A stretch of DNA of 64,000 nucleotides from Piromyces finnis finn. Its lineage: Eukaryota > Fungi > Neocallimastigomycota. A program made the position numbers and the translations under genes. The notes beneath the pieces were generated by a model. The model worked only from the letters and a program-made list of their open reading frames with translations. It was not told the origin of the DNA and ran no database searches. Shown here one piece after another: positions 41,176 to 64,000 of the stretch. Each line of letters opens with the position of its first letter. Positions within the stretch are counted from its first letter, which is position 1. The stretch spans positions 1,054,001 through 1,118,000 of the forward strand of contig MCFH01000004.1 in NCBI GenBank assembly GCA_002104945.1, read 5' to 3'.

Positions 41176-44100
41176 TTATTTGTATTTATATAATAAACTA
41201 TCTCTAAATATTTTCATTTTATTTTTATTCAAGTATTTAGTAAAACCATCTGCTAAATTTTCTTCTGATTTTATATATTCTAGACTGATTTTATTTTCTT
41301 TAATTAATTCTCTTACTTTATGGTACTTAATATCAATATGTTTTGACTTTGGATTAATCGTTTCATTATTTGCGTTGTAAATAGTTGCTTGATTATCAAT
41401 ATTGATTTTTAAGCATTCTTCCTTTATTTTTAATTCACTAAAAATATTTCTATACCACAGAGCTTGCTTTGAGCATTCACAAAGTCCATAATATTCTGCT
41501 TCGGCGGTTGAAGTTGATACACATTTTTGCAGTTTTGAGTACCAGCTTGTTGGTCCATTTCCCAATAAAAATACAAATCCAGTGGTAGATTTTCTTGTTT
41601 CTTCATCTCCCCCATAGTCTGAATCTACAAAAATCTTCAAATTTAAGTTTCTTTCAAAACGGATTCCATAATGAGGATTTTCTTTCAGATATTTGAATAT
41701 TTGTAATACATTCTTCCAATTTTGGATAGTAGGATTTTGTGAGAACCTAGATGCTTTGGTTACTGAAAATAAGATATCTGGACGAGTACCTATGGCTAAA
41801 TATAAAAGACTTCCTATTGCAGCTCTATAAGTAGTAGGGTCAAAAGGCTGATTGAGTTGTTCATCATTCTTGATTGGTGTAGTTGTCTTTGATCCTCTGC
41901 AGTTTTCTAAACCAAATTTGTGTAATATATCCTTTAAATACCTTTCTTGATGTAACAAATACCCATCTTTTAACGTTTCTACTTTGATTCCTATGATGAA
42001 ATTTGCATCACCAACATCCGTGATAACATATTTCTCTTTAATTAATTTAATAGTTTTATCTATTTCTTCCTTTTTACCAGTTATTAGGATGTCATCAACA
42101 TATATTCCAACTAAACATACTAATTTATTGTTTTTGGTCTTTATAAATATGCATGGTTCGCTAACTAATTTCTGAAATCCTAGTTCAATGAGAGTATTGC
42201 TGATGTTGTTATTCCATTCTCTTGCTGCTTGTTTTAAGCCATATAATGCTTTATTTAATTTCCATAATCCTTTTTTATACATTTTATCTCCTTCAGGTGC
42301 TTTCATATATATATCTTCCTTTAAATCTGCATACAAATATGCGGCCTTAACATCTAATTGATGGATTTTATAGTTATTAATTGCAGCTATTCCTATTAGG
42401 ATTCTTAATGAGTCTTGTTTTAGAGTAGGAGAAAAGGTCTCATTGTAGTCTTCTCCATATTCTTGTGTAAAACCTCTGGCTACAAGTCTAGCTTTGTATT
42501 TTTCTATCTCACCAGTGCTATTCCTTTTTATCTTAAATACCCATCTTGAATCAATAATATTGGCGTCTTCTGGAACTTCATCTATTCTTTTGAACACTTT
42601 TCTTTCTTTCATATTTAGCAATTCGGCTTCTATTGCTTTTATCCACTTATCCTTATCTTTTCTTTTAAATATATCATTATAGGAATTTGGCTCCTTGATT
42701 TGTGCTATAGTTAGCGCCACTTCCTTAATTTTCTTCTTTTCTGGTTCATGTTCATGTGGCTTACTAAATTTTTCTTCTATGACATCTTCACTTGGAACAA
42801 GTTTCCGCTTTCTTGGGAATTTTTCTTCCTTTGGTGGATGATTTTCATTTAATTTAAAATTTTTATTGGATTTTAATTTTCTATTTAGATTTCTCTTATT
42901 CAAAAAATTTTGTTTTGATAATAACTTTTTCTTATCAAAAAATTTTTTTTTAGATTTATCTTTATTGATTGGATCTTTAATTTCATTTTTATTTTTTAAA
43001 TTTCTCAAATTATATTCCTTTTTATTTTGATTATTTAAATTACTTTCTTTTTCATCAGAAATATTTTTAAATTTGGACTTTTCTTCAGGAATATTGATAT
43101 TTTCTTTATTCAAATTTCTTCTTATTTCATTCTCATTAATAGGTATGTAATTTTTCTTATAATATTCTTCATTCTTATAATTTACTTTTACATTTGAATA
43201 ATTATTTTCTATTTCTTTTCTATTATTTTTATTTATATTATTTTTGACACTCTCAATATTTTCAAAATCAATTTTCTTTCTTGTTCCTAAATCAATGTCA
43301 GGACTCAGGATATTTAAAAAATCATTATTGTCAATTTCTCCAGTTAAATCATTTATCTCCATTTCTGATGGTGTTTTTAATACTTCTTCAATTAATTCAT
43401 TTTTATTTACAATGTCTGAATTTTCTTCTATAAAATAAACATTTCCTTTTGCATTCAGGTATTTATTATTCCTTTTATTATCCTTTGATATATTTGAATT
43501 GTCTTTACTGTTTATATTTTTATTTTTCTTGTCGTCATTTCTCTTTATATTCACTTCTTTAATTTCACAAATTTCAGTTTCGTCAGCACTATTATATTTT
43601 AAATTATTATATTTTAAATTATTTTCTTCCAAGGTAAAGTTATTTATATTGCCGTCGTTACTTCCTGAAATGTCATTATTGTTTTCTTTTTCTTTATTGG
43701 TTTCACTTACAGATTCCATTGAAGTACTTATTTTAATTTCTTTATTTTCTTCCATTTCTTCAATTTTCTGGTAATTATTTTTGTTCAAACGTTCTTTTTT
43801 CTTTTCTTTTAGTTTAATATAGTCTAAGAGATTTAAGTCTTCTTCTTCTGAGTCTTCTATATTCATATTACTATCATTAGTGTCCTCGCAGACTTGCATA
43901 AAACTTTCAGAACTATTATTTTTTTCTTTATTTAATAGTGACGTGAGCTTATCCAGCTTTTCTTCTATATTTCTAAATTTTTCTTCATAATTTACTTCTT
44001 TTAAGTCTTCTTTATTACTAGTTTTATCATTGAGTGTTTCTAGGTTTTCATTCATTAATTTATCATTTTCATTTGAAATGTCCTTTTCTTTTTTGTCTTT

Positions 44101-46629
44101 ATTGTTATTGTTTTCATTTTCTTTATCATACATATAATTAAAGTTCCTTACTTGAAAAGTTTCTGTATCTTGACTATATGTTTCATTATTATTTTCTTTT
44201 TCTAAATTATAATTGTAGTCACCAGGTTCTTCTTCTAAAAAACCTACGACTCTTTTCACTTTAATTTTCCTTGATTTTATGTCGAATATTCTGTATCCTA
44301 CTGAAGATTCATCATATCCGATAAAGATTCCCTCCTTAGTTTTGTCTTGAAATTTTGGAATGTTACTGTCATCTAAATAATACACTTTACATCCAAATAC
44401 TCTTAAATTTTTATAATCAACTTTTCTGTTGTACATTAATTCAAATGGTATTTCACCATTAATTCCACTGTGCGGAACTCGATTATGAACATAGTTCGCT
44501 GTTTTCACAGCATCTTCCCAAAAGCGACGACATAACCTTGCGTCCATTAACATTGCAGTAGCAGTTTTTATTAACTTTCCATTGAATCTTTCTGCTCTTC
44601 CATTCTGCTCCGGATTTCCAGGGACGGTGAATTGTTGAGTTATTCCATATTCGTTACATAACTCCTTGAAGTTATTAGAAGTGAATTCAGTTCCATTATC
44701 GCTTCTAAGATATTTTACTTTGGATGATAATTCATTAGTAGTTTTATTCAGCCAATTTCCAAATTCTTTGAAAACATCACTTTTATTCTTGACAAATATT
44801 ACCCATCCATATCGACTGTAATCATCTAAGATACTTAAAAAGTATACGTTGTCATGAATTGATGGTGTGATTGGACCTACCAAATCGATGTGTACTAGTT
44901 CCAAAACACTTGATGCTCTACTATCTGACCTTTTATGAGGGATTTCTTTCATTTTGCTTCTCATGCATATTGTACAATTGTGAATATTGTTCTTTTCATC
45001 ATTATTGTTGAAATTCAGATGCCCTATTCTTCTATGCCAGTATTCACCATTGTTTCGTACATTATCGCACATTGAGTAATTATTAACTACATTACCTTCT
45101 TTGATGTACAAATTGAATACATCATATTCATTTGCTTTAACTTCGTATACATTATCTGTTTTCTTATCTTTTATATATGCAAATACATTATTGTTCTTCT
45201 CATCAAAGATTATTTGGTAGCCACTTTTAACTAACTTGGCAACAGAAATTAAATTTCGTTTTACATCTGGGATGTACATTACATCTTCTAATTTTATTGG
45301 TTCTTCATTAATAGATCCATTTACTTCACCCATATGTGTTGACTTTGTAGTCGCTCCATTTGCATAATTGATTGGTTCTACATGTTCAAAAACATTTTTG
45401 AGAATTCCTATATCTTTGGTAATATGATTAGAAGCACCAGAATCTAAAGTCCATGTAGTAAAACTTGTAGGTACATTTTCACAAGATACGTAATTGCATG
45501 ATTTATTATTACATTCATCATTGTTATTGTCAAATAATGCATTGTAATCAACTGTAAACAAATCTTGATATCCAACTTCTGGTTCAAAGTCTTCAGTGGT
45601 TTGTTTATTTACTATTTCACCTGTTGCTAAAAATGCTTCCTTGCCTTTATTTTTCTCTTTTCTTAGCCTTCTTGTAACTTCTTCTGAAAGTTCTTTTTGA
45701 ATACGACATTGTTTTACAGTATGTCCTTTTTGATGACAAAAATAACATGTAATGTTTTGTTTATTTTTGTTATTCCAATTTCTTTCTTCATTGGACTTTT
45801 CTTTTCCTTTATTTGTATTTTTATTATGATTATTACTTTGTTTGTTGCGGTAGTATTTAGTACTTTCCTTTCTTTTATCACCTTTGTAACTACCTTCAAC
45901 ACTAAAGATATGTCTAATTCCGAAGGTTTCAGATTTCTCTTTCGGATCAAATTTGTTCATCTTATCTATCATTCTTGCTGTGTCCTTTTTGCATTCTTCC
46001 CAGTCTTCATGCTTAAGGACTGTGACTTTCCTATATTTTTCTGGTAAGGCTTGATACAGTAAACCAATTTTTTCTTCATCATCTATTTTCACATTTAGTT
46101 GTTCTAACTTATTAAAGTTGGAATTTAACTTATTTACAAATCTTGAGAAACTTTCTTTCGGGTCGTATTTTAAGGAGTTTGTTTCCTTAATAAGCCTATT
46201 CTTTCTTTCTATTTTATCCCCTAAATAAATGTCTTCTAATAGTTTCCACATTTCGTAGCTTGTTAAAGACCTATCTTGGATATCTTGTTGGCAGTTTGGG
46301 CCTAAAGTATACCTAATTAAAAATTGGATATTCCTATCTGTTTTTAAGTCATCTTCGGTTACGTTCTTATCATAGTAGGTATTGATTTCAAAAGGTGCCT
46401 TTAGATATTCTTCTCCGTCGATATCCATTCCTTCGTCACTTTTGATCTTTGGGGTTTTGTTTTCATCAACCCAATCTTCAAGACCATAATAATTTAAAAT
46501 ATTCCTCATAAACATTTGCCACGTTATGAAATTTTTATTGTTCAATTCATAAGTGACCTTTCCTAGCATAACGGTAGGATCGAATATAGGAATTGATCCA
46601 GTATCTCCGTTAGATTTTCTTTTTGACAT
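41176..46629 (-). CDS. Copia Gag-Pol polyprotein, 1817 aa (Gag-ZnK-PR-IN-RT-RNaseH)
   Basis: CYFCHQKGHTVKQC zinc knuckle; WTLDSGASNH protease; WHRRIGH..CTIC; integrase LVHIDLVGP/DDYSR/LRSDNGTEF/PEQNGRAER and FIGY..GY; RT KARLVARGFTQ, YGLKQA, YVDD; RNase H DSDYGG/EAEY/DNQ/KHIDIKYH/LADGFTK. The IN-before-RT order is diagnostic of copia. Confidence 0.98.
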   Translation of the reverse strand: MSKRKSNGDTGSIPIFDPTVMLGKVTYELNNKNFITWQMFMRNILNYYGLEDWVDENKTPKIKSDEGMDIDGEEYLKAPFEINTYYDKNVTEDDLKTDRNIQFLIRYTLGPNCQQDIQDRSLTSYEMWKLLEDIYLGDKIERKNRLIKETNSLKYDPKESFSRFVNKLNSNFNKLEQLNVKIDDEEKIGLLYQALPEKYRKVTVLKHEDWEECKKDTARMIDKMNKFDPKEKSETFGIRHIFSVEGSYKGDKRKESTKYYRNKQSNNHNKNTNKGKEKSNEERNWNNKNKQNITCYFCHQKGHTVKQCRIQKELSEEVTRRLRKEKNKGKEAFLATGEIVNKQTTEDFEPEVGYQDLFTVDYNALFDNNNDECNNKSCNYVSCENVPTSFTTWTLDSGASNHITKDIGILKNVFEHVEPINYANGATTKSTHMGEVNGSINEEPIKLEDVMYIPDVKRNLISVAKLVKSGYQIIFDEKNNNVFAYIKDKKTDNVYEVKANEYDVFNLYIKEGNVVNNYSMCDNVRNNGEYWHRRIGHLNFNNNDEKNNIHNCTICMRSKMKEIPHKRSDSRASSVLELVHIDLVGPITPSIHDNVYFLSILDDYSRYGWVIFVKNKSDVFKEFGNWLNKTTNELSSKVKYLRSDNGTEFTSNNFKELCNEYGITQQFTVPGNPEQNGRAERFNGKLIKTATAMLMDARLCRRFWEDAVKTANYVHNRVPHSGINGEIPFELMYNRKVDYKNLRVFGCKVYYLDDSNIPKFQDKTKEGIFIGYDESSVGYRIFDIKSRKIKVKRVVGFLEEEPGDYNYNLEKENNNETYSQDTETFQVRNFNYMYDKENENNNNKDKKEKDISNENDKLMNENLETLNDKTSNKEDLKEVNYEEKFRNIEEKLDKLTSLLNKEKNNSSESFMQVCEDTNDSNMNIEDSEEEDLNLLDYIKLKEKKKERLNKNNYQKIEEMEENKEIKISTSMESVSETNKEKENNNDISGSNDGNINNFTLEENNLKYNNLKYNSADETEICEIKEVNIKRNDDKKNKNINSKDNSNISKDNKRNNKYLNAKGNVYFIEENSDIVNKNELIEEVLKTPSEMEINDLTGEIDNNDFLNILSPDIDLGTRKKIDFENIESVKNNINKNNRKEIENNYSNVKVNYKNEEYYKKNYIPINENEIRRNLNKENINIPEEKSKFKNISDEKESNLNNQNKKEYNLRNLKNKNEIKDPINKDKSKKKFFDKKKLLSKQNFLNKRNLNRKLKSNKNFKLNENHPPKEEKFPRKRKLVPSEDVIEEKFSKPHEHEPEKKKIKEVALTIAQIKEPNSYNDIFKRKDKDKWIKAIEAELLNMKERKVFKRIDEVPEDANIIDSRWVFKIKRNSTGEIEKYKARLVARGFTQEYGEDYNETFSPTLKQDSLRILIGIAAINNYKIHQLDVKAAYLYADLKEDIYMKAPEGDKMYKKGLWKLNKALYGLKQAAREWNNNISNTLIELGFQKLVSEPCIFIKTKNNKLVCLVGIYVDDILITGKKEEIDKTIKLIKEKYVITDVGDANFIIGIKVETLKDGYLLHQERYLKDILHKFGLENCRGSKTTTPIKNDEQLNQPFDPTTYRAAIGSLLYLAIGTRPDILFSVTKASRFSQNPTIQNWKNVLQIFKYLKENPHYGIRFERNLNLKIFVDSDYGGDEETRKSTTGFVFLLGNGPTSWYSKLQKCVSTSTAEAEYYGLCECSKQALWYRNIFSELKIKEECLKINIDNQATIYNANNETINPKSKHIDIKYHKVRELIKENKISLEYIKSEENLADGFTKYLNKNKMKIFRDSLLYKYK

Positions 46630-47138: not shown

Positions 47139-47343
47139 TTATTTTTTAATATTTGAAAGTTTCATTATTTTTGGGTATCTGATGTGTAACCTATTTCCTT
47201 CAAATTTCTTTTTGCATTCTTTTTGTATGGTGTTATATAAATGATAATAAAATAGTTTTCCTTCATAGTGAAAACTGCAATCCCATTGGCATTCAATATT
47301 ACAATTATTAATTAATGTTTATAATTACAAAAAAAAAAAAAAA

Positions 47344-47398
<55 letters not shown>

Positions 47399-49022
47399 TT
47401 AAGGATGTTTTATATAGGTATGTATAATGAAGTTGAAATAAATATGATATGAGATAGTAAATTATATATTATTGAAATAAATGATTTTATAACTTGAAAA
47501 AGGATATCTTTCAAAAAATGACATTAAAGCCATTAAATTTGTTAGATCATTACCATCTTTCACAAACCAATTTAAGGATTCAATAATTTTATTTTGAATT
47601 TTTTCTATGAAATTTATTACTTCTTCATATAATTCATAATTATTATTAAATATTATAGATTTTACATCGCATTCAATATCATTAAAAAGTTCTACCCATT
47701 GACGAATTAATTCTTCCACATCATGATAATTTGTTATTTCATTTTCTTCATTTATTGAATTATTATTTTTTACTTTTTTGTTTATTATTGTTTTATGTTT
47801 ATGCAATAAAGGCGAATGAGGGATTATATTTTTGTTGAAATTATTATTCTGATTATTAAATTCAGATGGTGAAGTATTTTTTATTACATTAATTAGCTGT
47901 AAGCTACTGTTATTATTGTTACTGTTGTTATTGTTGTTGTTACTGATTTTATTATTAAAATTACTATTTTCATCGTCATTATTACTGTTATTGTTCTTGT
48001 TATTATTATAGTTATCCTTTTTTTTTCCAGTATTGATTTTATTAGTATTACTTTTAGTATTATTCCAAAACTGTGTCAATGTAATAATGCTATTTTCTTT
48101 TTTCTCTTCTTTTTCTTTTTTATCATGATATATTTGAATTATTTCTTCTTGAATCGTTAAAGGTAGTTCATTCATTACATCCAAATCAATCTACAGTTTA
48201 ATAAAAAATTGATAAAAAAATTAATAATATGTATATATATATTGAATTGTGATTTATAATTTAAAATTCTTGTAACTTACTTTTGATGGTGATGGTAATA
48301 ATTCATTAATCTTATTTTCTTTTTTTGTGGATAATGTTATCGATTTATTATTTTTAGATTCAACTGATATAGTATTTTTCTTTTTTCTTCCTCTTTTTTT
48401 TCTTTCTTTTTTAACTTTTAATAATGTGTTATATACTTTATGCTGTGTTTCATTATTAATAATATCTGCTTTATGAGTGCTTACTATATCTTCTGGAGAA
48501 TTATTGTTATTATTTATTTTATCAACACTATTATTATTTTTATTACTATTTTGTGGATTATTATTATTGATAATACCATTTTTACTTAAATTATAATATT
48601 GAATTAATTCTTCTTGAATTTCTTTAGGTAATTCACTTAATACTGAAGGATCGATTATTTCTTTATTCATATCTATTATTTCATTATTATCATCATCATC
48701 ATTATTATTATTATTACTACTACTGGTACTACTACTATTACTACTATTATTATCATTATTAAGTATTAAGTAATTATTTATTGAATTATTAGAATAGTTA
48801 ATTTTTACATTATTGCAATTATTATCATCATCATTATTAGCATTATTATCATTGTCTTCATTATTATTGCTTAAACAATTATTTATTGTGTTAAATTTAA
48901 GCTTTTGCTGACTATCTATTATAATTAAATTAAAACATAATATGTATATTATTTTATTAAATAAAATCTTATTTTTTATTTATTTATTTTTTTTTATTTT
49001 TAAGTAAATAGCAATAATAAAA

Positions 49023-49071
<49 letters not shown>

Positions 49072-49688
49072 TATTATTTACCATGTAAATTAGATAATTC
49101 TTTTAATTTAGATAGTTGTACGCCAATTCCTCTTACTTCCTTTATATTTGAGAAATAATATTTATTTTATTATAATAATTCTATTAAAAATTATTTATTA
49201 TGCTATCATATTTTAATTATAAGATTATACCTTTGGATTAGGTTTTAAACTACTAATAATATTCCATGAATATTTAGAAATATCTTCAGATTTATATATA
49301 TAAGTGTGAAGATTTAGTGATTTTGACATATTTTTACAACTACCATGACCAAGTCGTTTCATTGGTTTATCAGCATCTTCATATCGTATTTTAAGCTTTA
49401 TTGTCAATTTTTGTCCTTTTTTATTTTCTCTTTTCATTCTTTCAGATACTTCAATAGCCAAATCGTTAATAAATTTCTAATTAATAAAAGTTTATTATTT
49501 ATAGATATGAGAAAAAAATTTACAAATATTATCTTACTTATGTTTATGATTTTCTTACCTTAAATTGCTCATCATTATTAAAACGTATACCCCATGTAAT
49601 TTCTGCTGAAATTGATCTTCTTTCATTACTTTCACTATTTAATTCTCTATCATCAATTCCCCTATATAATAAATAAATAAATAAAAAA

Positions 49689-49759
<71 letters not shown>

Positions 49760-49792
49760 ACAAACAAACAAATAAATAAACAAACAAACAAA

Positions 49793-49879
<87 letters not shown>

Positions 49880-50627
49880 ATATAATGATGTTGCTTATTT
49901 CTTATTTATTTTTTTTTACCTGCATAAATTATATAATTTTTGCCCTGTTTTTTTACCAAATTCTTTTTGTAAAGTTGAAAGTGATAATCTATTTTTTTTA
50001 TAAAATAAAAATATTTTAATAATTAAAATGCTGATTTATTTAAATTAAAATAATATGATAAATATTATACTTTTGAAGATCCCCGCAATTATTTATATTC
50101 TATTTTATAAAAGGTTTAGTTTATTTCATTTTTATTACTTATAAAAATTAAAAAACAATAATATTAATACCATATCATTGAATCTATATATAAATATATA
50201 AATATAAATATATAAAACATATAAAACACCGTTAATATTTATAATAAATACTAATTTAAAATAAATAAATAATATCAATATTTTTGGTATATTACCTTTT
50301 TGCAATTGACCATCCCACACCTGGCAAATCACTAACTTCAAATTGTTTAATAAAGTTTTCAGGCGCAGTTGGTGATAAATAAAATTCACCATTTGGCTTT
50401 GCTTTTTTTGTTGCTAATCTTGCTAATAATAGGTTAGTTGATATTCCAATGCTTGCATTACACTCTGTTTTATATTTAATTTCTGCTCTTATACTTTTTG
50501 CTTTTTCAATTATATCCGCTTCTTCTGTGCCAGTTCTTGGTAACCATATTTCAATATAAGCTTTGCAATTTATAAACATATTTATTATTATGAATTAGCA
50601 TAGTATAAAATTTTTAATAAATAAAGA

Positions 50628-50688
<61 letters not shown>

Positions 50689-53090
50689 ATTAATATTACC
50701 TTCATCACAACTAACTGCTTGAATATTATCACTGTTATTGATTAATACATTATATAATACTGTTGTAACTCTTTCATAATTTTCAAACTTTGATTTTAAA
50801 TATTTCATTTATATATTTATGTTTATTTATTATTAATTTACTTAGATTTATATATATCAATTTTTGTATGATTTTTATTATTGTAACAAGTATTAACTTA
50901 CTTCATATGGAATTACAACTAAATTAGGACATACTTTTTTTGCATGTGCAATTCTAATTTATTAATTTTAATAATTAAGTGTGTATATATATATTCATGA
51001 ATATATTATTTTATCATTCATTTTTAAAATAACTATTATAAAAAATAAATTATGTACAGCATTCCATTTTTCACTCCAAATGCTCTTGCTACATAATTAC
51101 ATGATGCTATGTCACTTCCAGAATTTTTTCCCGAAGAATGACTAACACCTACCGGTTTATTTATTAATTCAGGTCTTGAAATGAGTCCTACACTACATTA
51201 GAGTATTTAAATTATTTTTTTTAGAGAACAATTGAATTATTGAATTATTAAATTTATTTTTTCATTATTACCTAACAAAAAAACAATCCATATCTACATG
51301 CTATATATGATATAGGCAATACGTATTTATTAGTTTAATGCAAGATGTAGGGTAAATTTATTAATCATAATATATATATATATTCTTTACCATTATAAAT
51401 TTAGTTTTATTTGTATAGTCTTTAAATTTTGATATATTTATTTGAGAATTTATAATAGACTTAAGTTTATTTTTCCATAAACTAAGATAATGTAGTCTTT
51501 TTTTTTTAATTATATGATAAAATTGTTAAAAATTAATATTTTTTTCATAAATGTATTAGTATTTTATCATATCAACCTTGAATTTTCGTAATAATTTGCT
51601 ATAAAGTTAGGTGCAATACTTGAATGTTTAACATCCCATTTAGATTCGAGACTTTTATTTATTTCATTTTCATTTTCATCGTTTTCAATTTCATTCTCAT
51701 TTTCATTTTCATTTTCAATTTCATTCTTATTTTCATCTTCATTTTCATCTTTTTTTCCTTTATTTTGTTTTTTTTCATTAATTATATGTAATGTTTGATT
51801 AGTGTTACTTACTAAATTAATATTTGCATTGATTTCATTATCTTCATTATTATTAGTGCAAAAAGTATTGTTATTATTATATTTTATTTGATTGCTACTG
51901 TTAGTAATATCATCATAACTCTCATTACCGTTAATAATATCATTATTAAAAGCAGTAGATGCAATTTCTGAATAATTTGAATTTTGATTATTACTATGAA
52001 ACTTTAAAAAAATATATGCATTGTATTAATTTTCTCATATAAATAAAATAGTATTAATATATAAAACATTTTTGTTCATTTTTATTACGTTATTTAAAAA
52101 CATATTTGCTATTGAATTTTTATTAACTATACTATAATCTTTAATTGGCTTTAATTTTTTTTGTTGAACTGAATCGACAATCCATTTTGGTTTTATTATA
52201 ATTTTCGAGGCATTTTCATATTCTTTTACTATAAATTTTTTTTATATTATAAAAAATTTAATATAAAAAAACTTAAAATGTATTTATTAAATATTTTTTT
52301 TATTTTATTTTATTATTTATTTAATTCTTTACTTTTTGCTGAATTAAGTTGTGAAGCAATAACATGAGTAACCTTTTTAAATTTTTATGAAAATAATATT
52401 ATTTTATTAATAACCTTTTTTTTTTTTTTTTTTTTTTTTTGATTTTATTATTAATAATAGAAAAGATATTTTAAAGAATATAAATTTACCATATTTGCGT
52501 GATAATAATATTCGTATTGTCCTCTATCCAATATATATATTAAAAAAATGAAGAATCCATCATTTATTTTTAAGCCTTTATTATTATTATTATTATTATT
52601 TTTAATTTATGCTTTATTAAGTTAATATATCATATACCCATGTTGAATTATTATTCTTCTCAATTCTTTCTGAGATGGAATTGTATAACCTTAAAAGTTT
52701 TTGATTTTTTATATAATTTTTGAGTAAAATTTTAAATTTGCAAATAGTTATTCATATAAACAATAAAATAAAATTATTAACCATTAATGTAGAAAACACA
52801 ATTCTTAAATATTTGAGGAAATTCTTCTTTGTACAGTTCCTGTCTATATTATAAAAAAGTATTTTTATAGTATATAAAAATGAATTAGTTTTTTAAATAA
52901 TGAATAGATAATTTAATTGTAAAGTCTTATTTTATTTTTTTATAAATTATAATATTAAATAATTTATTTTTAAATACAATTCCTGAGCTTGGATTCTTAA
53001 TTTTTTCTTTTTTTGTTTTGTATAATCATTAAAAGAATTTATTTTATTTTCACTTTCATTTCGTTTTTTATTATTTGTTTCTTTATTCAT
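47139..53090 (-). CDS. REV1: DNA repair protein REV1 (BRCT + Y-family polymerase + 2 UBM + CTD; multi-exon)
   Basis: BRCT IFKNCVFYING|YTIPSQKELRRIIIQHG; HVDMDCFF; DIASCNYVARAFGV; QAVSCDE|AYI; GISTNLLLARLATKKAKPNG; DLPGVG; RGIDDR; UBMs IDPSVLSELPKEIQEE and MNELPLTIQEE; CTD. End exons are approximate. Confidence 0.93.
47317..47507 (-). other. U12-type AT-AC intron in REV1
   Basis: 5' splice site ATATCCTTTT (47507-47498), branch point TCCTTAAC (47405-47398), terminal AC (47318-47317). Splicing restores ...SFFER|LINNCNIECQWD in frame. Confidence 0.85.
49670..49880. repeat. (TAAA)n microsatellite in a REV1 intron
   Basis: Direct tandem array with CAAA variants; a second shorter array lies at about 50628-50687. 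Confidence 0.9.
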
Positions 53091-62530: not shown

Positions 62531-64000
62531 ATGATATCTAAAAAATCAAGATCAAATATATCTAGTAGCAAACTATATAATAAACAAATTGAGAGAGTGC
62601 CTTTTAGAACTTTGTAATATTTGTTATCCATACTTCTAATTATTTTATATTATAAATTGGTTACAAGTGAAGATATGTTAATTTTTTTATATTATATTTA
62701 ACTTTTTTTTTATTAGTTTACATAATCATGAATTATTTTCACCTGATAAAACATCAATACCAATGGCGAATTATTCAAAGGCAGAAATAAGAAATGATGT
62801 TAAATATGAAACAATTAATTCATTAAGAGATGGTGTATATCATCACAGAGATTCAACAAAACCAAAGTTTCTTACACAAATGATAGCATATATAAAAAAA
62901 GAATTTGCTGAACTTGGAATAGAAAAGTAATCTATTAGCAATAATATTATCTTTAAAAGTATAGGATTAATATTAACTATTAATATTGTTATAAAAATTC
63001 TTCGATAGTTCAAAACCAGGATGCATTGAAAGATTACAAGTGTATAAAACAGTTTTCGGTATATAGATTTTATCTAAAATATATATGTTTTATTATAGAC
63101 TAAAATTGTATTATAAAAATATTTGGTAAAAGATTTCTTCATGGAAGAGTTTAAAACATATCAACCAATTTTAAGCGATATAAAAAATGAATATGAATTA
63201 AATCTACAAAATGCCTTAAAAATGGAAGATGAATAATATCCTTTTTAAAAATTAATATTAATTGATATATTTAATTATATTTTATGATTTCCTTAATCAA
63301 TTCATTATTATTATTATTGTTTTATGCAATTACTTATTTAATTAAAAGCAAATATTCTGTGCTAAAATATCAATCGGAAAAACAAATTGAAGAACTTAAG
63401 CAATTATCAAAAAATGAATATGAAGAGAAAATGTATTTCAAAATAATTATATCTTTTTTATAAATTTTTTTTTATAATTATATGTTGTTAAAATTAAAAA
63501 AAACTTTTTATATTTTTCATTACAGAGATAAATTAAACAGAGAAATTGAACGATCTAAAATTCAATTCAAAGAATTAAAGAATGAAAAAGAGCTATTAGA
63601 AGATAAAATCGATAAGCTGGAAATAGCTGAAGTTAATGATGTAATAATGGATAAACAATTCTATTATAAAAAAGTTTTTTCATTTTTTTATGAAAATATA
63701 ATGACAAGTATTATATATAATTATAATTTTAGGAACGTTTATCTAATCGTGTATATCACTTAGAACAAGAATTAGAAAGAACTAATAAATATTGTTCTGA
63801 ATTAATCCAACAAAAGGATTCTGAATTAGAAAGATTACACGATAATGTTAAGCATAGTATATATTCAAATATTATATATAAATTATAAACATTAAAAATA
63901 TATATAATTTACTTTTTTTAATATAATTAATCATTAACATATTTAATTATTAAAAAATAAATTATTTTAATAGTGAATTTAAGAATATTTGAGTTGGTAG
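62531..64000 (+). CDS. TSNAXIP1: TSNAXIP1-like coiled-coil protein (partial, runs off the window)
   Basis: Spliced KPKFLTQMIAYIKKEFAELG...ERLQVYKTVF|DFFMEEFKTYQPILSDIKNEYE resembles the TSNAXIP1 N-terminal domain as recalled; followed by coiled-coil exons. Confidence 0.7.
63236..63333 (+). other. U12-type AT-AC intron in the TSNAXIP1-like gene
   Basis: 5' splice site ATATCCTTT (63236-63244), branch point TTCCTTAAT (63289-63297), terminal AC (63332-63333). Splicing removes an in-frame TAA and gives EDEY-YLIKSK. Confidence 0.85.

Follow-up and report, generated by a model that had tools for sequence, protein, structure and literature searches.

U12-type splicing is taken to be marked, and mechanistically constrained, by a short and fixed interval between branch site and 3′ splice site, an assumption that is also built into programs for finding minor introns. 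The optimum spacing of the branch box from the 3′ site in U12-type introns is 11–13 nt (Turunen et al. 2013, PMC3584512). In the gut fungus Piromyces finnis, the last intron of a REV1-like gene carries a consensus U12 branch box 82 nt from its predicted 3′ splice site, which raises the questions of whether this is a U12-type intron, where its branch forms and how its 3′ site is chosen. We examined these questions in the window (the whole 64-kb stretch of DNA analysed), in the orthologous gene of Neocallimastix lanati and in a survey of the P. finnis genome.

The last intron of the REV1-like gene

The gene is multi-exonic and runs on the minus strand from ∼53000 to 47139, the AT-AC intron being its last. 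It is called REV1-like because its exons match IMS, IMS_HHH, IMS_C and, weakly, UBM: the Y-family core is represented in the upstream exons by Pfam matches to IMS (28.4 bits) and IMS_C (22.7 bits), both over the cut-off, and by IMS_HHH at 18.9 bits, under the cut-off, and UBM-like motifs in the penultimate and an upstream exon score 18–20 bits, below the cut-off of 23.3. A Pfam search of the C-terminal exon pieces, each taken separately, found no family, and a PDB sequence search with profiles of either C-terminal exon returned nothing meaningful, so that ‘REV1 CTD’ is a positional label only. Hence, of the original prediction that splicing restores the frame of the REV1 CTD including its Trp, the frame and the Trp are retained, whereas homology to a known CTD finds no Pfam or PDB match. 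The features discussed below are as follows.

47508–48184, minus strand: penultimate coding exon, for which the upper bound given is simply the start of the open frame
47317–47507, minus strand: predicted U12-type AT-AC intron, 191 nt, phase 2 (the orthologous intron of N. lanati is 153 nt and annotated AT-AC)
47499–47507, minus strand: 5′ splice site ATATCCTTT of the minor type, following exon AG and identical in the N. lanati orthologue
47398–47405, minus strand: U12 branch-site consensus TCCTTAAC, sole copy in the 64-kb window
47319–47397, minus strand: spacer from box to 3′ site, 79 nt, with 0 AC and 0 AG
47317–47318, minus strand: terminal AC of the intron, in the context AAAC/ATTAATTAAT; the junction AC/ATTAATTAAT is also found in N. 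lanati
47275–47276, minus strand: first AG downstream, 42 nt beyond the AC, an in-frame alternative 3′ site that was rejected
47139–47316, minus strand: final coding exon, in which the split Arg codon is followed by 58 codons; 81% amino acid identity to the orthologue

The penultimate exon is an open frame of 225–227 codons that runs up to the 5′ splice site and ends in phase 2 as ...SFFE + AG (TTT GAA AG at 47508). Splicing at the AC at 47317 keeps this frame, the split codon AG+A giving Arg, followed by LINNCNIECQWDC... and by the stop codon at 47141–47139 (the latter position corrects an earlier note). From its first base the intron reads ATATCCTTT, in agreement with [A/G]TATCCTT, and TCCTTAAC agrees with TCCTTRAY, the box complementary to U12; its complement, the GAGUAAGGA box, is retained in the U12 of P. 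finnis. The candidate branch A is 47399 or 47400, and the distance to the last intron base is 82 nt (counted from 47399, the second A). Both signals are on the minus strand where the original prediction placed them, and the spacer that it put at ∼80 nt without AC or AG measures 79 nt and consists of TTTT merging into (TA)16 (47394–47363), T18 (47362–47345), A, T15 (47343–47329) and GTAATTATAA. We file the intron as a variant because its box is 82 nt from the 3′ site, compared with 17 nt in the orthologue. The T18-A-T15 tract, 12 nt upstream of the AC, resembles a polypyrimidine tract, a feature that U12-type introns are expected to lack, and is probably a microsatellite rather than a splicing signal. 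The predicted RNA fold of the intron is not more stable than that of shuffled sequences (z = −0.86), and a (TA)n hairpin alone does not account for the spacing.

In a window of ∼20% G+C, neither signal is enriched by itself: the ATATCCTTT 9-mer is found 4 times against 3.5 expected and the TCCTTAAC 8-mer once against 1.19 expected, the latter having a chance frequency of ∼9e-6 per position, or ∼0.002 per intron of 191 nt. The combination of a 5′ site that ends a frame of 225–227 codons with the box and an in-frame conserved exon is far beyond chance.

Two other observations concern the same locus. The REV1 introns at 49544–49791 and 50595–50808 (minus strand) contain long repeats with a 12-nt period whose translation gives (FIYL)n pseudo-ORFs; they too point to unchecked expansion of microsatellites or minisatellites within REV1 introns. 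An intact copia-type gag-pol ORF of 1817 aa (window positions 41176–46629, minus strand) ends ∼500 nt downstream of the REV1 stop.

Choice of the 3′ splice site

Among 1.8 billion representative proteins the only close relative of the upstream exon was P0001, the product of a read-through ORF; the metagenome contig that carries this ORF is identical to the N. lanati assembly GCA_016946835.1. A protein homologue search with the 225-aa Asn-rich exon gave no match and one with a two-sequence profile gave P0001 only; metagenome scans with a profile of the last exon and with one of the upstream exon found no relative. The orthologue comparison is therefore with one species, N. lanati. There the exon end and 5′ site read ...TTTGAAAG/ATATCCTTT, the consensus box TTCCTTAAT lies 17 nt before the AC, and the exon resumes with ATTAATTAAT, as in P. 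finnis. The public N. lanati protein KAG4094996.1 spans the junction as ...MTFFERLINSCSIECQW... (FFE-R-LINS); because it reads across the junction, the 153-nt AT-AC intron is already contained in a public gene model. This entry (JACVTC010000059.1) is a stand-alone model of 131 aa that is really the C-terminal end of REV1, the N. lanati REV1 gene model having been split upstream yet with the AT-AC intron included.

The last 76 aa of the penultimate exon are 57% identical between the two species, and the last exon has 81% protein identity and a dN/dS of 0.06, with synonymous sites nearly saturated. Moreover, for the 13 whole codons between the AC and the downstream AG, pS is 0.80 and pN is 0.06, which indicates that this segment is coding, and therefore that both species use the AC as 3′ site. 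The AT-AC termini at the true junction are thus given by the orthologue together with the substitution pattern. This agrees with the proposal that the site used is the first AC after the spacer, which now has behind it orthologue conservation, the public N. lanati model and coding-type substitutions in the AC-to-AG segment. Judged from these comparisons, the intron is very likely a real U12-type intron ending at the AC at 47317.

An AT-AG intron using the AG at 47275, or a U2-type intron with other boundaries, would be an alternative at this junction. The AG had been expected ∼40 nt beyond the AC, with loss of a Trp-containing segment if used; it is indeed 42 nt away, and as a 3′ site would remove 14 codons, the Trp among them. 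In favour of the AG are its in-frame position, the TTGC in front of it and its presence in the orthologue as well. Against it, the substitutions between AC and AG are of the coding type (pS 0.80, pN 0.06), the public N. lanati protein contains this segment, and introns with AT-AG termini are disfavoured (PMC3584512); for a U2-type intron, no GT 5′ site fits the frame. Both the AG 3′ site and GT 5′ sites were rejected on frame and substitution pattern, and we regard such boundaries as extremely improbable.

The intron might, on another reading, be poorly spliced or often retained because the branch box has moved away from the 3′ site, as a decaying gene end or as regulatory retention, and a large part of the mRNA would then encode a REV1 that ends in ...FFERYPFSSYKIIYFNNI at a stop codon and is without its last 59 residues. 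This would be in keeping with the suboptimal spacing, the unusual AAC/ end and the long microsatellite; read-through stops after 18 codons (ORF 47462–48184), and no public protein with the own C-terminal exons of P. finnis was returned by protein searches. However, the last exon is intact and 81% identical to that of N. lanati with a dN/dS of 0.06, from which it follows that it has been translated in frame along both lineages, and the same architecture is present in CLP1 and URB2 (see below), genes that are essential in yeast. Poor splicing or retention is accordingly an improbable description of this intron.

Spacing of box and 3′ site across the genome

The REV1 introns of the two species barely align, apart from a shared (TA)n, in front of which P. 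finnis has TCCTTAAC and N. lanati a degenerate TTCCAAAC; the T-run/TTGTAATTAT stretch of P. finnis is where the proximal box TTCCTTAAT of N. lanati aligns. In this two-species comparison the consensus box is in different places.

A second AT-AC minor intron is present in the same window:

63236–63333, plus strand: AT-AC minor intron of 98 nt, ATATCCTTT...TTAC

Here TCCTTAAT is located at 63290–63297, 37 nt from the terminal AC with (ATT)n between them, and the exon upstream matches TSNAXIP1_N; the intron had been put forward as a second example of wide spacing and is a real AT-AC intron of that kind.

We then searched the whole genome for ATATCCTTT followed by a branch box within 20–400 nt and compared the counts with a reversed control. 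There were 28 matches for ATATCCTTT with TCCTTAAC (9 in the control) and 38 for ATATCCTTT with TTCCTTAAT (13 in the control). We retained 29 introns in which one open frame ends at the 5′ site and another resumes at an AC; because a consensus box at most 400 nt from the 5′ site was required and the 3′ sites were mostly placed by open-frame continuity, the survey is neither unbiased nor exhaustive. The box-to-3′-site distances were 9, 11, 11, 11, 13, 13, 13, 13, 14, 18, 20, 23, 24, 25, 29 and 29 nt in 16 introns and 33, 34, 37, 41, 43, 48, 48, 62, 64, 67, 82, 168 and 423 nt in the other 13. Thus long spacing recurs, as had been suggested, with 13 of the 29 AT-AC introns (∼45%) at 30 nt or more, and the textbook peak at 11–13 nt is also present. 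The long spacers often cross microsatellites or T-runs. In ∼130 minor introns of ∼150 nt, <1 incidental TCCTTAAC would be expected genome-wide, compared with at least a dozen long-spaced boxes seen. Since ∼45% of the surveyed AT-AC introns have spacings of 30–423 nt, the minor spliceosome of this lineage appears to tolerate spacing far beyond the 11–13 nt optimum of animals and plants.

The minor introns of this genome are apparently nearly all AT-AC: against the 28 and 9 matches given above for ATATCCTTT with TCCTTAAC, the pair GTATCCTTT and TCCTTAAC gave 2 matches and 5 in the control, so that a GT-AG sample could not be built. Most minor introns of animals and plants belong to the GT-AG subtype.

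The introns end in TAC/ in 27 of the 29 cases and in AAC/ in two, the REV1 intron and one other (L007), and the AAC/ of the REV1 intron may be a weak 3′ site. Between box and 3′ site, the 12 long introns other than that of URB2 contain 3 AC or AG dinucleotides compared with 28.8 expected from the 5′ parts of the same 12 introns. This depletion comes partly from low-complexity inserts, and it looks as an acceptor-exclusion zone would. In 12 of the 13 long introns the best match to the box in the last 40 nt is no better than background (5–6 of 8 positions); the exception, L008, has a 7/8 proximal box, TCCTCAAT, and hence some of the long distances may be only apparent.

For several introns the junction can be placed on protein grounds. 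In CLP1 (L027) the exons abut at positions 59/60 of the CLP1_N profile with the box 168 nt upstream, and in an NF-YB-like gene (L059) the Pfam profile junction is 42/E/44 with the box 67 nt away. In XPG (L013), taken as a control with a proximal box at 9 nt, the junction is 31/D/33, and this exact junction indicates that the Pfam-continuity method works. CLP1 skips an AAAAC 30 nt before the TAC that is used; therefore a ‘first AC’ rule is not strict.

The URB2 gene (L009, contig C46) has an AT-AC intron of 533 nt. Its only TCCTTAAC is 423 nt from the first AC, and ∼390 nt of this interval are (ATTTT)n. Its predicted junction corresponds to the annotated Anaeromyces robustus protein ...VELIKGLMHCF.... 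In the orthologues a near-consensus box is found 32 nt from the AC in A. robustus and the distance is ∼34 nt in a third species. The URB2 5′ splice site of this third gut fungus is ATATCCTTAAC, which itself contains the branch-box 8-mer.

These data bear on a reading in which the REV1 intron is U12-type and ends at the AC, and a non-consensus A near the 3′ site, such as one in GTAATTATAAAC, forms the branch, the distal TCCTTAAC serving only to recruit U11/U12 across the short 5′ part or being a relic. Such a branch would suit the strong preference of minor spliceosomes for 11–13 nt (PMC3584512), TTGTAATTAT aligns with the functional TTCCTTAATTAT box of the orthologue, and the AC skipped in CLP1 is not predicted by a pure scan from a distal branch. 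However, with 5 of 8 positions the proximal stretch agrees with the box no better than background, and the GG of U12 would find no C there for pairing; a perfect box would occur by chance in a 191-nt intron with p ∼0.002; and a single consensus box, with none in proximal position, is also found in twelve further long introns. We therefore hold a proximal branch to be unlikely, and from the sequence evidence the distal TCCTTAAC box is probably the branch site of the REV1 intron.

Minor spliceosomal RNAs

The retention of a minor spliceosome in this lineage, which the original prediction assumed, is not new, because minor introns and snRNAs have been published for P. finnis and Neocallimastix (Larue and Roy 2023, PMC10639083; PMC11347168), with 129 minor introns given for Neocallimastix californiae in the available text of the second study (Olthof et al. 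2024, PMC11347168). It is borne out by our search of the 56.46-Mb, 232-contig genome with Rfam models, in which U11, U12, U4atac and U6atac were all detected. U12 (66.6 bits, cut-off 53) and U6atac (52.1 bits, cut-off 33) scored above the Rfam gathering scores, and U11 (38.2 bits, cut-off 39) and U4atac (49.2 bits, cut-off 53) just below them; the U11 and U4atac candidates have conserved cores or stem sequence and Sm sites. The U12 candidate retains the branch-pairing sequence AUGAGUAAGGA. Among the proteins, a search of the P. finnis genome for PDCD7 (U11-59K) gave no match, with the control silent too, and a search for zf-U11-48K gave one match, to a domain that is not specific to the minor spliceosome.

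The sole U6atac candidate (52.1 bits; C112:211500–211648) reads AUGAGCCGAGAGA, compared with AUGAAAGGAGAGA in the family consensus, so that, of the two G's expected to pair with CC in the ATATCC 5′ site, one has been substituted. A genome search for a second U6atac with the canonical box found none, the other 20-mer match not being a U6atac. The U11 candidate (C152:317514–317628) has a well-conserved core and an Sm site, and its 5′ end, AAGAAAAG, is without GGG; in animal U11 this GGG pairs with the 5′ splice site. The U6atac and U11 candidates are thus without the canonical G's that pair to the CC of the 5′ site, a point against the model given below. The change of spacing might be linked to these unusual 5′-site-pairing boxes. 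On the minus strand, ∼550 nt from the U11 candidate, there is a match to a SNORD14-like C/D box snoRNA, with 52 bits against a cut-off of 64.

Relation to known systems

The REV1 intron resembles the canonical U12-type AT-AC introns of animals and plants in its ATATCCTTT 5′ site, its TCCTTAAC box, its AT-AC termini and the four detectable minor snRNAs, and also in its host gene, which is of the DNA repair and information-processing class (PMC3584512). It differs from them in that the box is 82 nt rather than 11–13 nt from the 3′ site, with (TA)16 and a 33-nt T-rich tract filling the gap, and in that canonical minor introns are without a polypyrimidine tract and have the 3′ context YAC, whereas this intron ends in AAC (PMC3584512). 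It belongs to the same lineage and is the same kind of intron as the minor introns published for Neocallimastigomycota, as far as the available text of those studies goes (PMC10639083, PMC11347168).

In the available text of the Neocallimastigomycota studies the classifiers score a branch box only near the 3′ site (PMC10639083, PMC11347168), and in that of the Physarum study the branch window extends from −45 to −5 (10.1101/2020.10.12.336362). The boxes of REV1 (82 nt), NF-YB (67 nt), CLP1 (168 nt) and URB2 (423 nt) are outside such windows; at 82 nt the REV1 box would therefore be missed by a window of −45 to −5. In the accessible portions of this literature on the minor introns of Neocallimastigomycota and Physarum (PMC10639083, PMC11347168, 10.1101/2020.10.12.336362) we found no description of unusual box spacing. 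To that extent the genome-wide departure in spacing is new and the retention of minor introns is known.

Physarum polycephalum, according to the available text of Larue et al. (10.1101/2020.10.12.336362), is likewise a lineage whose minor splicing departs from the textbook, with a changed branch motif (TTTGA), a matching change in U12 and a tight spacing of 9–12 nt. In P. finnis, by contrast, the motif and the U12 box are canonical and it is the spacing that is relaxed.

Some introns of the major spliceosome have distant branch points with an AG-exclusion zone and select the first AG. Like these, the REV1 intron has a long pyrimidine-rich stretch free of acceptors, and acceptors are depleted in the long introns surveyed (3 compared with 29 expected); unlike them, it has a minor-type 5′ site and box and ends in AC. 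By these shared features, the distant branch point with its AG-exclusion zone would be the closest mechanistic analogy.

A model for distal branching and its meaning

The best explanation overall, to which we assign a probability of roughly 0.6, is a genuine U12-type AT-AC intron with its branch at the distal box and its 3′ site at the AC. The branch would form at TCCTTAAC, the sole box complementary to U12, at its distance of 82 nt from the 3′ site. An ancestral proximal box, which is still 17 nt from the AC in N. lanati, may have decayed in P. finnis, as the comparison of the two species suggests, and box and 3′ site are now set apart by the (TA)16 and T-run tract. Once the first catalytic step is completed, the first suitable AC downstream, with the stretch before it kept free of AC and AG, would be taken as the 3′ site. 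Such a search for the first AC is, as a selection rule drawn from sequence patterns, a tentative proposal whose chances we put a little short of even. More speculative still is its extension to the lineage, in which the minor spliceosome of gut fungi would have lost the strict spacing rule and would settle on whichever suitable (T)AC comes first downstream of the U12 box, be it tens or hundreds of bases away, which we consider possible but rather doubtful.

If the only U12 box in an intron can indeed be 30–400 nt away from the 3′ site, the spacing constraint is not intrinsic to the minor spliceosome, and these fungi would provide a natural system for the study of acceptor choice in the second step. 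Current catalogues would then under-score minor introns in AT-rich fungi, and public gene models would be broken at such introns, an example being the C-terminus of N. lanati REV1, which appears as a separate protein of 131 aa. In the REV1-like gene, synthesis of the last 59 residues of the C-terminal region depends on the removal of this intron. Moreover, if this model is true, microsatellites could expand in minor introns (to 82 nt in REV1, 168 nt in CLP1 and ∼420 nt in URB2) without killing the gene.
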